A DNA stretch of 64,000 nt from Trichosphaerium sp. ATCC 40318 (taxonomy: Eukaryota; Protista; Tubulinea): contig JALMLS010000130.1 in NCBI GenBank assembly GCA_038496445.1, positions 62,001 through 126,000 of the forward strand, read 5' to 3'. Position numbers and translations under genes: made by a program. The notes under the pieces were generated by a model. It searched no databases. It saw only the letters and a list, made by a program, of their open reading frames with translations, and was not told the DNA's origin. Of this stretch, positions 3,801-59,836 are shown piece after piece (the first letter of the stretch is position 1; each line of letters opens with the position of its first letter).

Positions 3801-4261
3801 GTGCCTGAAAGTTTGTGCCGACGCGTTCTTGGTCTTGTTCTGTAGTCTCATTCTCAATAATGTCATCGAGGTTGTCAATTAACCGCAAACTCCAAGTATT
3901 TTTTGCATTAATTTTCTAGAGGTTATAAGGCATCGCATACCACTTTTTTACGCACGTTAGCCGCTGACAGATGTACAATATCCCTGTATAGCTCAGATAA
4001 CTGAGCTTGTGATAATTTGACTTTAGGGCGCTTTGTTGGTGTCCCTGGATCGCCTTGAGATGATAGACGTCTACGAAGTGGACTTGGAAGATCAACATTT
4101 CCTGGTACTTTGAAAGTTGATTTTTTTCGTTTTTTACGCTGCCTTCGCTCTGCCTCGTCATCGTTTTGAGGTATTATTTCTTCAATTTCGTCATCAGCTG
4201 TTGCCTTTTTTTTTTGAGACCAAGTAGATAAGCGCCGTTTCTTCGATCTTTTAGACGACAT
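870..4261 (-). CDS. NCAPH: Condensin I kleisin subunit (CAP-H/Barren/Brn1), multi-exon
   Basis: Spliced motifs KINAKNTWSLRLIDNL, NFQVASATLDASIKIYSYRVDSVH, DPLFRKTSASFD, WAGPNHWKF, LLPPD, and C-terminal FICLLHLANEK. Confidence 0.95.
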
Positions 4262-4335
4262 GGCACTACAGTGCTTTAACCGCCAAGTTTTTTAAGTTTC
4301 GATCAAAAACTTAAGTTGAGCAGTCTTTAAGCCAC
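4262..4335. promoter_or_regulatory. 74-bp bidirectional promoter between condensin and the Kir-like gene
   Basis: Divergent ATGs at 4261(-) and 4336(+), with several TTAAG/CTTAA elements between them. Confidence 0.55.
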
Positions 4336-5549
4336 ATGTCCAACGTGACCTTTAAAGGAGTAAAACAGGACGCTGGAGATGTATATTACCATTTTTTAAA
4401 GTGTAATACAATTTCCGTGATTATTGCTTAAATAAACCTTCGTTTAGTGTCTTGGATTTCACTCCTCGCGTATGTGTTTGTGTTGGCGGTGTTTGTTTCA
4501 GTTTTATTTGGTATCGCTTTCTGCGTACGTACTGATTACATCAATTTAATCTTACAGCATAACAGATAGTACAAGGCGTAGATTTTCCTATTTTGGATGG
4601 CGCTGAGCCAACTACCGCAGATTACCTATTTCACAGGTAACTGTCAGCGTCACTGATCTCTACTATAACACGCCTGTAGCTTTTATATATTTTCAGCGAT
4701 GGGAAGCGATGCAACGAATGTCACCACTTCATCTAAGCTGCTAGGCAGCATAACTCATATGTTCGGTGTTGTGTTACTAGCTCTGTTAATAGGTACAACC
4801 AACTATAAGACATAAAGCCATAAGACATGTGATAGGTGTCATTTACAGCAAGTTTGCAATACCTAAAAGTAGAATTTTATTCTGTAATTACGCAATCATT
4901 TCTGGTAAAGAGAAGAGACACCTCCATTTAAGAGTTACGAATCAACGTGATAATACTATTCTGGATCCTCAGGTTAAGATATCTGTATCAATTCTTAATC
5001 GCAGTGGGGCACCAGTACGTTAAATACAAAGCCAAAGCATTTCTGACATTGCAATTTAAGGGCAAAGAAATGGTTGATTTGACACTTCTCAGAGATAGTT
5101 CGCCGATAATGCCGTTTGTTTGGACACTATCAGTAAGTTAGTTACACGGAATCTCTAAATAACTGGTCCTCATTGGCCACTCTTGATACCAAGACTAGTA
5201 TCATTGTTCTTTTGATATTTCTTTTACATTTTTTCACAGCCTCCTTAGCACCCTATCACTCCAGATAGTCCTTTTCATGATATACGAACTCCAGAGGACC
5301 TAGAAAAAACAGATTGCTTTCTTTGTGTTCTATTGACAGGTGTAGATGGAACGTACTTTGAGCAACTGTATGCTTACAAACAATATGACTCAAGTCACAT
5401 TGTATTTGACAAAGATTTTCGTAATACAGTTGAAAGAATGAACGATAACACTTGGTGCATTAATTTAGGTGCGCCTTAAATATTTTTGCATCACGTTTCA
5501 AACATACTAATCGGACACAGAGCACTTCCACCAACTCGTTGACTTGTAA
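4336..5549 (+). CDS. Inward-rectifier (Kir/KirBac-like) channel with a non-canonical filter, multi-exon
   Basis: DVYYHFL..SW slide helix, TM1, pore region HSFYIFSAMGSD, TM2 ..GVIYSKFAIPK, ILFCNYAII, LRVTNQR, WTLSHPITPDSPF, LTGVDGT. These are all Kir pore or cytoplasmic-domain motifs. Confidence 0.88.
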
Positions 5550-6094
5550 ATGAATTGACTTTTTTTGAATAAATGTGCATCTCACAAATGGTTTTTGACA
5601 TGTACTACCACAATAGTTGTGGTTGTAAACCATACGTCACCTTTTGTATCTCACTGTGTGAACTCTCCTTTTAGTTTGGCACCAACATACAACTAAGCAA
5701 CGTTTCAATTGAACCTTAATTTGTTCATGCCATGCCATGTCTTGTACTTCAAGCTCACCGCCCACATAATAGTGGTTCGTTCAATCCACAGATGTTCCAC
5801 ACCTTGAACTCTCCTTCAAGTGTTCTATTTACATAATTACATTGCACCTACATGAGTGCTCCTTTTAGATTCTCTGTTTATAATTGGAAAGAAGCTTGTT
5901 GCAAGATTGACGTTGCAGAAAACAGATAACACAATCCGTCTTTTGACAGACCCTGGGTTTTTATTTATTACAAGATTTTTTGAGGCTTTAGAGTGAACTT
6001 TTGCAAAAGTTATTGAAAGGTCACGACCAAAATAGACTCAGAAAACGCTTGAAAAAAAATCGCTTACAGCATCTTACTACGTACAGACCTGCCT

Positions 6095-7801
6095 ATGGCT
6101 GAACTCCAATCAAAGCAAGTTAATTTACAACATAAAAACTACCTGGCCGTTGGTTCAGTTCACTCCATCGCAATCGCAGACGATGGCTACGTTTATTCGT
6201 GGGGAGGAAACGGATATCACCAGTTAGGTAATACGCACAAAGAAGAGGTGTATACTGCGCGCCCAATCGAGGGTCTCCAAAATATCGCTTGTGTTGCTGC
6301 TGGTATACGCCGGAACCTTGCGGTTGATGAAAATGGATCTGTGTACACGTGGGGCGGTACTTGCATATCACTAACCCAAAGCCAACACGTGTTCTAAGTC
6401 TTACTCGAATAACGCAAGTAAGTGCTTGTATCATTTGTATGGCTTTATCCGAATCGGGTTACGTGTACTCTTGGGGAGACGGACAGTCGCCAACACTTAT
6501 TTCAAACCTTGAGAATGTTTCTAAAATTCAAACCAATCACTTTATGAGTGGAGCAGTTACAACCACAGGACATGTTTTCCTGTGGGGAACAACAACAAGT
6601 GAAGAAAAAGATAACAAATTATTCTTAAAACCAAATAAGATATCACGTGTCCCACAAATTGAAGATGCCATTGATATTGCCATTGGTACGTATCATGTAT
6701 TAGTTCTCATCAGATCAAAGAGGGTGGTTTCATTTGGATACAACGATAGTGGTTGTCTTGGGTTGGGAGAAGATAATAAGTATGGGTATGGTGTCATCAC
6801 TGAACTAAATGAGATAAAATCTATACATTGTGGTGATAAATCCTCTTTTGCCATTGACCATCAAGGATTCTTGTATGGCTGGGAGGTAGTTAACTGGATA
6901 GAACCGTTTTCAGGTTGGGGTGAAGGTAGACATCTTGATAACTTTACATCAAACAAGCCTGTAAAAATACATGGAAAGTATGTCGAGATTGCTACTAATA
7001 ATTGCCATTATATGGCTATTCGTGACGATTTTTCTCTGATCACGGGTGGCGACAATACGTTTGGAGAAGCAAATCCACAGACTTTGACATTCAAACAACT
7101 TAAGGTGCAATTGTTTGATTTCATTTGTCGTATACTTATCTATTGTTTAGTTGCCTGAACATCAATCCAACGGTGTATCAACAATTAGTAACAAAGAATT
7201 GAAAGAAGATCCAAAAGAAAAGTACTCGACCAAAGAGTTGATTGATACAGCACTTGAATACACAAAGTTTGGTGATATTCCCGAACACCTAGACATCATT
7301 CAAAGCGCACTTGAAGACTTAGAAATACCGCAAAATCAAGTTAAATACTCAAACAAGGTACATTTGCATAACAAACAGGATTCTAATCTAAATTTCATAG
7401 TCCAGTGAACAAAGAGGTGATATTCCAACTGAAGAAGGTATGTTCTTACCTCAGCAATCATGGATAACTAAGCCTAATATTTCTGTTGTCGACGCTAAGG
7501 TACACTATACTTCTAAAAGCTTTTTACTAATTTGGTTAAGCTGCAATTCTCTCAACCACGTAACAATCAATCTATTCCTTCTATCCCTGTGTTACAGCCC
7601 CAAAGCGAAGCAACCAATTGGGAGTCAATACTACGGAAAGTGGGAATTGCGAATGAACGAGCAGAAGAGCTTGGATCTTTGATGACTATGGCTGCTATTA
7701 TACCTAGTGAAATTGCTCCAGATGTTTTAAAAGAGCTTGGGTTCAATGTGATCGAACGCATTAAAGTCATCAAAGCAAAAAAAAACAAGGTATTATTATA
7801 A
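6095..7801 (+). CDS. RCC1/BLIP-II repeat protein with C-terminal SAM-like domain; one frameshift at about 6352
   Basis: Repeated GxVYxWG, HSIAI and GxN.xGxLG motifs. C-terminus LKELGFNVIERIKVI is SAM-like. The frame changes in the G4 run at 6351-6354. Confidence 0.8.
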
Positions 7802-26848: not shown

Positions 26849-27378
26849 ACATCTTGCTCGTACTTGTTATGACCATACAAGAAAAAAACAAACAAAACAA
26901 ACCGAACCTTAAAAAATAAACATTTGAACTGGTTTAAACAACGACTTCATTCTGCTTTCTTGCTATCACATAGCGACGTTTCAAAAAATTGTTTCTCCAA
27001 TCTAATAGACACGCGACTCGTAAATATATTAAAAGTTGATAGTGTCACGTGACATTTTTTTCACGAGATCGCAACGTTCATCCTTTTGGACTTGTACTTT
27101 TTTCCTCAAAAATGGGGGCAGTCGTTTCTTTTTTATCGATAATCTGGGCCAACTCTTGTGGCCATTTTGACAAAAGAAGTGTGTTCGGCCAAAGCAGAAG
27201 TCAGCTCTGAAAATAAAGTCAAACAAAATCTGTCGTCTTTTACTTTAAACGCAACTAGAATCTCCACAACAGAAGTCCACTTCTGCTGTTGTATATAGCG
27301 AATTATTTTAATAAACAACGTACGTTACTAAGAACAAGTGTCTAAACGGCCGTCTGATGTGTTTTGTTAAGCTTTTTG

Positions 27379-28542
27379 ATGTCTGGGTTACCTCTAAACG
27401 TACTGGATATGCCACCTGAGGTTATTTCAGAGGTATTTCAATACCTCGATAAGGGTAGATATCCTTTAGCCCAAACATGCTCCTACTTCTCAGATATTAT
27501 ACATAACATCGTTGGCTATACTAGAATAGAAATTAAACAAGAAAGCGACACTACAAAGATAGGAAAATACCCTGGAATAAAAGCGAATACTCTTGTAAGC
27601 GTAGCAAATAGCATAAAGCTTCCTAGCAGTTTCAAGAATCTAGTTGGTATCCGTAACCTAAACTTGTGGGATTCACCAATACGAGATGAACATATTGCGC
27701 AGCTAGCTGGGGTCCATACAATCGATCTTGGCGGTACTAGAGTAACTGATGTTGGACTTAAAGCTCTTGCAGGAGTACACACTATACATCTAACCAATTG
27801 CGTGGATATAACTGGTGAAGGTATAAAAGAGCTTGCAGGAGTACATATGTTATCTATAAATAGTCTAAACAAAGCACAAGCTCTAAATTCATTGAAAGGA
27901 TTACATACTATTGATTTTTCAAGCCATAAACAGTTTTGTTTATTTAGTTATGCAATAAGGGATGAACATCTTAAAGTAGTATCAGGATTGGGTGTTAAAG
28001 AAGTTAATCTTGATGGTGTATATAGTTTTACGGATGAAGGGTTAAAGCATTTATCAGGAGTACACAAAATAAACTTATCTCATACAAAAACAACAGATAA
28101 AGGTTTGAAGTATCTTGCTGGTGTTCACGTGATAATCATCCGAGATGTTCGTAATATAACAGACGAAGGTATAAAGCATATTTCTGGAGTACATACATTA
28201 GATATAGCCGGATGTAAAAAAGTTACAGATGAGGGATTAAGGTCGCTTAAGGGCGTTCATAACATTAACTTATCTCGGATTTGTAATATCACTGATCGTG
28301 GTGTTAAAGCGCTCGCTGGTGTTCATACCATTCATCTAGAGGGTACACGTGTTACTAATGAAGGTATACGTGCTATTGAAGGTGTTCATACAATAGATGT
28401 TACTGGATGTAGAGTAAGCGCTGAGGTTGTTGAGGGTCTTGCTGGTGTTTGTAAGATTGTAGGGTTGAATAAGTTTAAAAGACAAGAAACAAAATCCCAG
28501 TCTAATTCTCCATTTGCTAGGTATTTAGACAACAAATACTAA
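27379..28542 (+). CDS. Intronless F-box/leucine-rich-repeat protein
   Basis: F-box LDMPPEVISEVFQYL. About 12 repeats of type (I/V)TDxGxKxLxGVHTIxL. Confidence 0.9.
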   Translation: MSGLPLNVLDMPPEVISEVFQYLDKGRYPLAQTCSYFSDIIHNIVGYTRIEIKQESDTTKIGKYPGIKANTLVSVANSIKLPSSFKNLVGIRNLNLWDSPIRDEHIAQLAGVHTIDLGGTRVTDVGLKALAGVHTIHLTNCVDITGEGIKELAGVHMLSINSLNKAQALNSLKGLHTIDFSSHKQFCLFSYAIRDEHLKVVSGLGVKEVNLDGVYSFTDEGLKHLSGVHKINLSHTKTTDKGLKYLAGVHVIIIRDVRNITDEGIKHISGVHTLDIAGCKKVTDEGLRSLKGVHNINLSRICNITDRGVKALAGVHTIHLEGTRVTNEGIRAIEGVHTIDVTGCRVSAEVVEGLAGVCKIVGLNKFKRQETKSQSNSPFARYLDNKY

Positions 28543-58778: not shown

Positions 58779-59836
58779 TCATAAGCTTGGGTTCCCAAAC
58801 ACTTTACTTAACAACCATTTAGTTCTTGACCCTCCAAACCTTTGTCTACGGCCCCTTCTATAGAAGTATCGCACACTAAATTCACCACTTGTCTTCCAAC
58901 AAAGTTCCTCTCCTTCTTTGAGATCATTCTTGTAAGTGCATTCCTTTTCTAATTGACCATTGTCAAACCACTCCTTATACTCTCCTTCCTTTTTACCGTG
59001 CTTATAAAAGTGAGTTTTATGAATCTGTCCATTTTCTCGCCACTGCCTCAGTTCGCCATGTAATCTATCATTCACAAAATAACATTTCTTTACCAATACA
59101 CCTGACTTATTCCAAAATTCTTGCTGTCCATCTTTCAATCCATTCTTAAACGACCATTTCTTGGACAATTGTCCATTACTAAACCAAGATCTAAATTCTC
59201 CATGGAAGATACCTTTTAAGTAGTTATGGTGAAGCACCAAAGTACCTTTAAAATACTCCTTGTACGCTCCATCAAGCTTGCCGTTAGAATAAAATGCCTT
59301 TGTTCTCAATTTACCATCTTTATTCCACTCCTTGTAGCTTCCTTCTCGTTTACCTTTGACATAATAACAACCTTCCTTTAACTGACCATTTTTATGCCAT
59401 GACTTGTACTCTCCTTCATACAAACCATTTTTGTAGTACACTTCTACTTGTAACTTTCCTCTCTGCCAAATCGAACACTTTCCTTCTTTTTTCCCATCTT
59501 TATACTGACACCTTTCTTTCAAAACTCTATGCTGGTACTCTCTATATTCTCCTTCTCTTTTACCATTCTTATACATACACGTCTTCCGCAAGTGTCCATT
59601 AAGATACCACATTTTGTGCTCACCGTGTTTTTCTAAATTCTTATTGAAGCGAGTGCTCGTAGCTGCTTGTTTAGATAACAGGGGCCACAACATGTATATA
59701 TCAACGCCAAAATCTATGATATCAAGTTGTAGCTCTAAGGGAAGCTGTAACAAGCGAGATAGAGTCGGTTTTTGCTCGTTGATCTAAATTGTATTGGTTA
59801 CAATGCCAAACGTAAGGTTTTTACCTTTGTTGCCAT
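58779..59836 (-). CDS. F-box-like + MORN-variant (YwqK-like) repeat protein; single 5' intron
   Basis: Exon MATK, intron 59784-59824, then LLQLPLELQLDII and about 11 repeats of GxYKxWxxNGQLxxxxxYxNGK. Confidence 0.85.

Follow-up and report, generated by a model that had tools for sequence, protein, structure and literature searches.

A single-copy KirBac-like channel gene of the protist Trichosphaerium sp. reads SAMGSD in place of the K+ selectivity signature

To our knowledge, Kir channels are regarded as K+-selective throughout, and the only exceptions described are three to five bacterial proteins known as NirBac. On other channel chassis, filters such as those of NaK (TVGDG) and the CNG channels have lost the tyrosine and the second glycine of the K+ signature, which leaves a shorter, two-site filter that does not discriminate between K+ and Na+. 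The NirBac proteins are bacterial and place foreign pore loops on a full Kir chassis, with NirBac1.1 and NirBac1.2 coming from Anaeromyxobacter and NirBac2.1 from Gemmatimonas (Zubcevic et al. 2015, PMC4607889). NirBac1.1 and NirBac1.2 form tetramers that are non-selective among monovalent cations; NirBac2.1 carries the filter TTGTD, and its function is not characterised in that report (PMC4607889). Filters that depart from the K+ signature have also been described in protists, namely the TFGADG filter of kinetoplastid TcCat (PMC3369953) and the modified K+ filters of the protozoan 'GYX' proteins (PMC3283738). Reported protozoan Kir homologues, from Toxoplasma and Cryptosporidium, keep GYG, in the form GYGS. 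Indeed, in the literature that we searched on protist Kir-like channels the filters are canonical and the non-canonical ones sit on other chassis, and this search returned no described eukaryotic Kir-domain protein without the K+ signature.

Here we analyse a gene in a stretch of 64,000 nucleotides (the window) from Trichosphaerium sp. ATCC 40318, whose initial annotation, made from the letters alone, had pointed to a Kir-fold channel with an altered filter and had invoked NirBac as a precedent, which the published work shows to be real (PMC4607889). Read from the DNA, this is an intact, single-copy and intron-rich gene for a predicted KirBac-like channel subunit of 275 residues.

An eight-exon gene and the reading of its pore loop

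Direct reading of window positions 4336-5549 on the plus strand gives a gene of eight exons with 275 codons and a stop (CDS of 828 nt) in an unbroken frame (Table 1). All seven introns are GT-AG with consistent phases, six of them measuring 41-52 nt and one 116 nt, so that the earlier description of an intact Kir architecture free of frameshifts holds. The ATG of exon 1 is the first after an in-frame stop. At the other end exon 8 is tentative: it looks like the profile tail 'sRFHDVePL' by eye only, with a profile score of -2.7 bits, and as an alternative the last intron may be absent, the protein then ending ...INLGAP* at 5479.

Table 1. Features of the channel gene and its neighbours, in window coordinates
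Feature	Position	Strand	Description
Exon 1	4336..4402	+	Initiator ATG and N-terminal slide-helix region (MSNVTFKGVKQDAGDVYYHFLK, with one base of the codon that follows)
Exon 2	4448..4524	+	TM1 (SWISLLAYVFVLAVFVSVLFGIAFC)
Exon 3	4566..4636	+	Turret and first half of pore helix (IVQGVDFPILDGAEPTTADYLFH)
Exon 4	4680..4792	+	Second half of pore helix, degenerate filter, outer linker with NVT sequon, TM2 (FYIFSAMGSDATNVTTSSKLLGSITHMFGVVLLALLI)
SAMGSD	4693..4710	+	Occupies the place of the K+ selectivity filter; favoured register A-M-G-S-D on T-I-G-Y-G
Exon 5	4836..5014	+	C-linker (G-VIYSKFAIPKSRILF), then the opening beta strands of the Kir cytoplasmic domain
Exon 6	5061..5132	+	Middle strands of the cytoplasmic domain (GKEMVDLTLLRDSSPIMPFVWTLS)
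Exon 7	5249..5468	+	Core of the Kir cytoplasmic domain (HPITPDSPF...TGVDGT...)
Exon 8 (tentative)	5521..5549	+	C-terminal (E)HFHQLVDL and TAA stop, after a GT-AG intron at 5469-5520
Lysine/arginine-rich protein gene	3923-4335 region, starts 4261	-	No Pfam family; divergent, 74 nt from the channel ATG at 4336
RCC1-repeat (RLD) gene	6095-7158	+	Downstream of the channel gene
F-box/LRR protein gene	27364-28542	+	Same window
MORN-repeat protein gene	58779-59753	-	Same window

The stretch that matters most is put together from two exons. Exon 3, which among the splice choices tried is the sole open reading that joins exons 2 and 4, ends with ...GCA GAT TAC CTA TTT CAC AG at 4636; a 43-nt GT...AG intron follows at 4637-4679, and exon 4 continues from 4680 with C TTT TAT ATA TTT TCA GCG ATG GGA AGC GAT. 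The spliced product (a slash marks a splice junction or the codon that spans it) reads ...TTADYLFH/S/FYIFSAMGSDATNVTTSSKLLGSITHMFGVVLLALLI, that is, YLFH/SFYIFSAMGSD, and the context in which SAMGSD is read thus depends on the splice at 4637-4679. On direct reading of the spliced plus strand the SAMGSD codons fall exactly where they had been placed at the outset.

The surroundings of the channel gene are an ordinary compact eukaryotic neighbourhood, with an even GC content across the window (0.34-0.40), and the channel gene and the divergent lysine/arginine-rich gene probably share a very short bidirectional promoter. The seven spliceosomal-type introns and the eukaryotic neighbour genes likewise bear out the proposal that the channel gene is eukaryotic.

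Kir family identity and relatives

Homology searches were run exon by exon. Exon 7 matched positions 79-148 of Pfam IRK_C with an E-value of 0.0041, which lies under the gathering score for a single exon; apart from this match, Pfam and NCBIfam searches with single exons returned nothing genuine, the pore exons had no match, and PsbT matches on TM1 were dismissed as hydrophobic noise. A Pfam IRK search of the whole genome (70 Mb, 642 contigs) did not detect the transmembrane part of the channel gene. When exon 7 was compared by phmmer with 1.84 billion representative proteins, eight passed an E-value of 0.001. P0003, P0005, P0006, P0007 and P0008 matched with E-values from 5.9e-7 to 2.6e-4 at 33-37% identity, and all of them carry IRK_C; the remaining matches (P0001, P0002 and P0004) are long repeat proteins with 6-15 matched stretches and without IRK_C, and were rejected as compositional. 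Against all PDB chains exon 5 gave 13 matches, all of them KirBac, with KirBac1.1 (1p7b) on top (residues 145-193, E 0.018); these residues span the linker that follows TM2 and the strands with which the cytoplasmic domain begins. Exon 4 had no match in the PDB, and a match of exon 7 to a GlcNAc-1-phosphotransferase (E 0.63) was taken as chance.

The order of the parts became apparent with P0008, a KirBac of 278 aa; its relatives carry the names of cyanobacterial ion channels or inward rectifiers. In tblastn against positions 4201-5700, P0008 produced one HSP for each of exons 5, 6 and 7, the three being colinear and coinciding exactly with the exons (that on exon 6 corresponding to P0008 residues 177-198), with a summed E-value of 1e-17 in what is a very small database. 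A KirBac profile made from P0008 and 119 relatives (120 sequences; E-values per sequence, Z = 1) orders exons 1, 2, 4, 5, 6 and 7 strictly colinearly. Exon 1 falls on profile positions 22-41, colinear but weak at 1.0 bit, and its DVYYHFLK-LSW resembles DFYHRIFKISW in P0008. Exon 2 falls on positions 44-67 (3.5 bits; top 19-residue hydropathy 2.74) and the TM2 part of exon 4, residues 15-35, on positions 105-125 (0.2 bits; hydropathy peak 1.96), and two glycines of the TM2 region coincide with the conserved G119 and G128 of the profile. Exons 5, 6 and 7 follow on positions 129-182 (40.3 bits), 193-213 (9.5 bits) and 215-285 (44.2 bits), and the cytoplasmic domain encoded by these exons reaches a total of 94 bits.

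The protein thus has the full set of parts of the family, namely a slide helix, TM1, a pore helix, TM2, the basic C-linker YSKFAIPKSRILF and an Ig-like domain with HPITPDSPF. Among the features that define membership of Kir/KirBac (TC 1.A.2 IRK-C; Pfam IRK PF01007 and IRK_C PF17655), the IRK_C cytoplasmic domain is present, as are the slide helix and two transmembrane segments that flank a pore loop in the order and spacing of the family (1.0, 3.5 and 0.2 bits, colinear), and the T-x-G-Y/F-G signature is absent. That the protein has a Kir fold, as the initial annotation had it, is therefore supported by the IRK_C, PDB KirBac and profile matches, and judged by these sequences it is closer to prokaryote-type KirBac and to oomycete Kir-like proteins than to animal Kir channels.

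The relatives found with exon 7 are of different kinds. The gene calls on the contigs of P0005, P0006 and P0007 are compact and tightly spaced, and all three proteins are taken to be bacterial fragments; P0007 directly follows a separately called IRK/Ion_trans_2 ORF and looks like part of a split KirBac gene. The apparently bacterial P0005 (GCA_010027085.1, L009:2586-3137) has 183 aa with IRK_C only and no transmembrane domain, and its N-terminus (..SVFDAFFT..) resembles a pore-helix remnant fused directly to the RVANER strand, so that it may have arisen by deletion or may be a soluble Kir-domain protein. P0003, on the 1.9-Mb contig KI913959.1 of assembly GCA_000520115.1 (L008:3001-5665), is a tandem two-unit Kir whose relatives include a Phytophthora protein. 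Each unit of this 805-aa protein consists of a TM pore module and IRK_C (4TM/2P plus two Kir domains), the filters reading TIGFG and then TIGYG; P0128-P0137, one of which is named Phytophthora cinnamomi, are apparently single-unit.

Exons 5 and 7 lean towards different relatives. Exon 5 is up to 40% identical to bacterial KirBacs and scores 43 bits with bacterial versus 27 bits with oomycete proteins. In a tree made from exon 7 only (71 columns), which is weak, exon 7 is placed within the oomycete clade (rough support 80/99) on a very long branch and with a skewed composition. A direct recent transfer from bacteria is unsupported, because the gene has seven introns and a GC content like that of the host; an ancient transfer may have been its origin.

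Pore loop, filter register and a canonical paralogue

The claim that the TxGY/FG signature has given way to SAMGSD was upheld, and every relative retrieved with a pore region keeps the signature: [TS][IV]GYG is present in 120/120 KirBac relatives (P0008-P0127) and T[IV]GYG in 10/10 oomycete relatives with a pore region, except that unit 1 of the tandem P0003 has GFG. The divergence of the channel gene is restricted to the pore module, as pore loop and TM2 score about 0 bits on the KirBac profile and exons 5-7 match it well. A loop of normal length is nevertheless present, since the stretch between the TM1 and TM2 anchors comprises 62 residues, versus 60 in the profile.

Exon 3 alone had no match to the KirBac profile, and hmmalign left residues 1-13 of exon 4 unaligned; the register of the filter was scored ungapped against the match states of the profile. 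Placing A-M-G-S-D on T95-I96-G97-Y98-G99 (A6 on T95) scores +1.2 bits, with registers of exon 3 at +1.2 to +1.3 bits, whereas S-A-M-G-S on T-I-G-Y-G (S5 on T95) scores -10.5 bits and needs no deletion. The favoured register leads by about 12 bits before gap costs, at the price of one extra indel. In this register the pore-helix residues D, F and S also fall into line (ADYLFHS on LDAFFFS), and the filter, or the position directly behind it, would have lost one residue ahead of TM2 (GYGD to GS-D). Whichever register applies, the filter lacks its threonine/valine pair, its tyrosine and, at a minimum, the second glycine.

Animal Kir channels have longer turret loops than KirBac, and it is only by comparison with them that the turret is short, as it had been called; the loop lengths are otherwise ordinary for KirBac. 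Measured against the cyanobacterial KirBac consensus, the protein has about 2-3 more residues between TM1 and the filter, and as many or one fewer in the linker from the filter to TM2. Directly after the degenerate filter, the predicted extracellular linker contains an NVT sequon (window 4717-4725), where N-glycosylation at the outer pore mouth is possible.

The same genome encodes a second Kir gene, KirBac-like and with a canonical filter, found at C338:450-3710 (L004) and C83:15491-18751 (L005). These copies are 99.6% identical over 3.26 kb and are probably haplotigs; the AMGSD channel gene is found once in the assembly. The canonical paralogue has many short introns, and its pore exons read FFFSFQTISTIG/YGG; one of its introns cuts the selectivity filter itself (TIG/YGG). 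On the same profile its pore module scores 20.1 + 38.4 bits (58), versus about 0 for the AMGSD gene, and the region equivalent to exon 5 scores 4 bits in the paralogue versus 40 bits for exon 5. A recent duplication of the canonical paralogue is ruled out as the source of the AMGSD gene by the low identity of the last exon to exon 7 (23%) and by different intron positions. Searches of its own genome with exons 4, 5 and 7 returned no paralogue, second copy or second allele, and among 1.84 billion representative proteins, viral contigs and metagenome contigs no orthologue was detected. The suggestion that the gene might stand for a subfamily found no support: it is a singleton without an orthologue in the libraries searched and without a second copy in the genome.

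Alternative readings and comparison with known channels

The AMGSD subunit probably passes other cations than K+, or none. Four subunits would come together around a pore with a shortened filter that would be unable to select K+ and could pass monovalent, possibly divalent, cations, and gating would be retained through the conserved Kir cytoplasmic domain and the lipid-facing linker. We give even odds to the gene encoding such a pore, that is, a tetrameric, non-K+-selective cation pore on a Kir chassis that is gated by the Kir cytoplasmic domain; a non-selective pore is suggested because NirBac and filters of the NaK/CNG type behave in this way.

A misplaced exon boundary, with the real mRNA carrying a canonical filter by way of another exon or splice, is highly improbable. 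The start of exon 4 is pyrimidine-rich and ends in TTTTCAG (~4696), which resembles an alternative acceptor, but use of this acceptor, or skipping of exon 3, leads to stops within 15 codons, and the frame from TM1 in exon 2 to the TM2 part of exon 4 is open with one nearby GT/AG combination, the others tried meeting stops. Between 3500 and 6100 none of the frames on either strand encodes G[YFL]G in surroundings like those of a filter, which makes an alternative canonical exon very unlikely, and the spacing of the TM1 and TM2 anchors that the present model yields fits the family. More weight is due to a young pseudogene or unexpressed relic in which constraint was lost and the pore loop decayed while the frame is still unbroken, although we think this unlikely. 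A search for RNA sequencing runs listed none, which would fit such a relic but does not mean that the gene is silent. The relic would also be in keeping with a singleton without orthologues in the protein library or in viral or metagenome contigs, with the normally most conserved part being the most diverged, and with the very long branch and skewed amino-acid composition of exon 7 in its tree. Yet neutral decay that erased the pore loop would be expected to leave stops or indels elsewhere too, and 275 codons are open over eight exons with all splice sites GT-AG; the chance that 275-290 random codons stay open at the local base composition is about 2e-9, and that for the 60 pore-loop codons alone about 0.015. 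The confinement of the divergence to one module, the 40 bits of exon 5 against 4 bits in the canonical paralogue, and the retention of TM2 hydrophobicity and of both glycine positions also speak against decay.

It is also conceivable, if doubtful, that a protein is produced which conducts nothing by itself, being either a modulatory or dominant-negative subunit that co-assembles with the canonical Kir or a membrane protein that is no channel and has put the Kir cytoplasmic domain to another use. The genome does encode a Kir with TIG/YGG (C338, C83) as a potential partner, the conserved parts of the AMGSD protein (slide helix, C-linker and cytoplasmic domain) are surfaces of assembly and gating, and its filter lacks the second glycine and the tyrosine. 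However, at 23% identity (20 bits) between exon 7 and the corresponding exon of the canonical paralogue co-assembly is less likely, and NirBac channels with equally foreign pore loops conduct as homotetramers.

Extending the non-selective pore by analogy, we put forward, tentatively and at somewhat under even odds, that the AMGSD protein is the first eukaryotic counterpart of NirBac, a Kir-domain-gated and non-K+-selective channel, possibly Ca2+-binding or Ca2+-permeable by virtue of a ring of four aspartates in its filter, which evolved independently in an amoeboid protist on a chassis of the KirBac type. If this is true, replacement of the pore loop on a Kir scaffold would be a recurrent evolutionary route that extends beyond two bacterial genera. 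A eukaryotic Kir chassis with a foreign filter would then provide a second, independent natural experiment in which the selectivity module is swapped and the gating machinery kept, with a possible use in learning how selectivity depends on the length of the filter and on the G-[ST]-D motif, and it would bear on the role of Kir-domain channels in non-animal eukaryotes. The gene also carries a warning for annotation, as a full-length model would probably be labelled 'inward rectifier potassium channel'.

Among known systems, the canonical paralogue is of the same family and genome and also intron-rich, but it differs in intron positions, and identity between exon 7 and its last exon is just 23% (20 bits). 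The KirBac channels (KirBac1.1, P0008-P0127) share with the AMGSD protein the length class (275 vs 278-300 aa), the short N-terminus and turret loops, the colinear domains and 33-40% identity in exons 5 and 7, and differ in that they read [TS][IV]GYG where the AMGSD protein has an unalignable pore helix and filter. The oomycete Kir-like proteins are likewise Kir-type proteins of non-animal eukaryotes, and unit 2 of P0003 is the top single match of exon 7 (39%), but they keep TIGYG or TIGFG. NaK, CNG, TcCat and the 'GYX' proteins resemble the AMGSD filter in keeping the first glycine, in having lost the tyrosine and/or the second glycine and in bearing an acidic residue at the outer mouth, whereas they are built on other chassis without a Kir cytoplasmic domain. 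The closest likeness is to NirBac: a Kir/KirBac chassis with divergence confined to a pore loop without TxGYG, and in NirBac2.1 a filter, TTGTD, that shares the x-x-G-[ST]-D shape with AMGSD. Compared by description, the gene has the Kir architecture and the pore loop lacking TxGYG by which the NirBac type is defined (PMC4607889). The NirBac channels come from bacterial genes without introns and share overall about 35% identity with KirBac1.1, whereas the AMGSD gene is eukaryotic with seven introns, and an independent origin is likely; non-selectivity has been measured for NirBac1.1 and NirBac1.2 and is predicted, by analogy, for the AMGSD protein.
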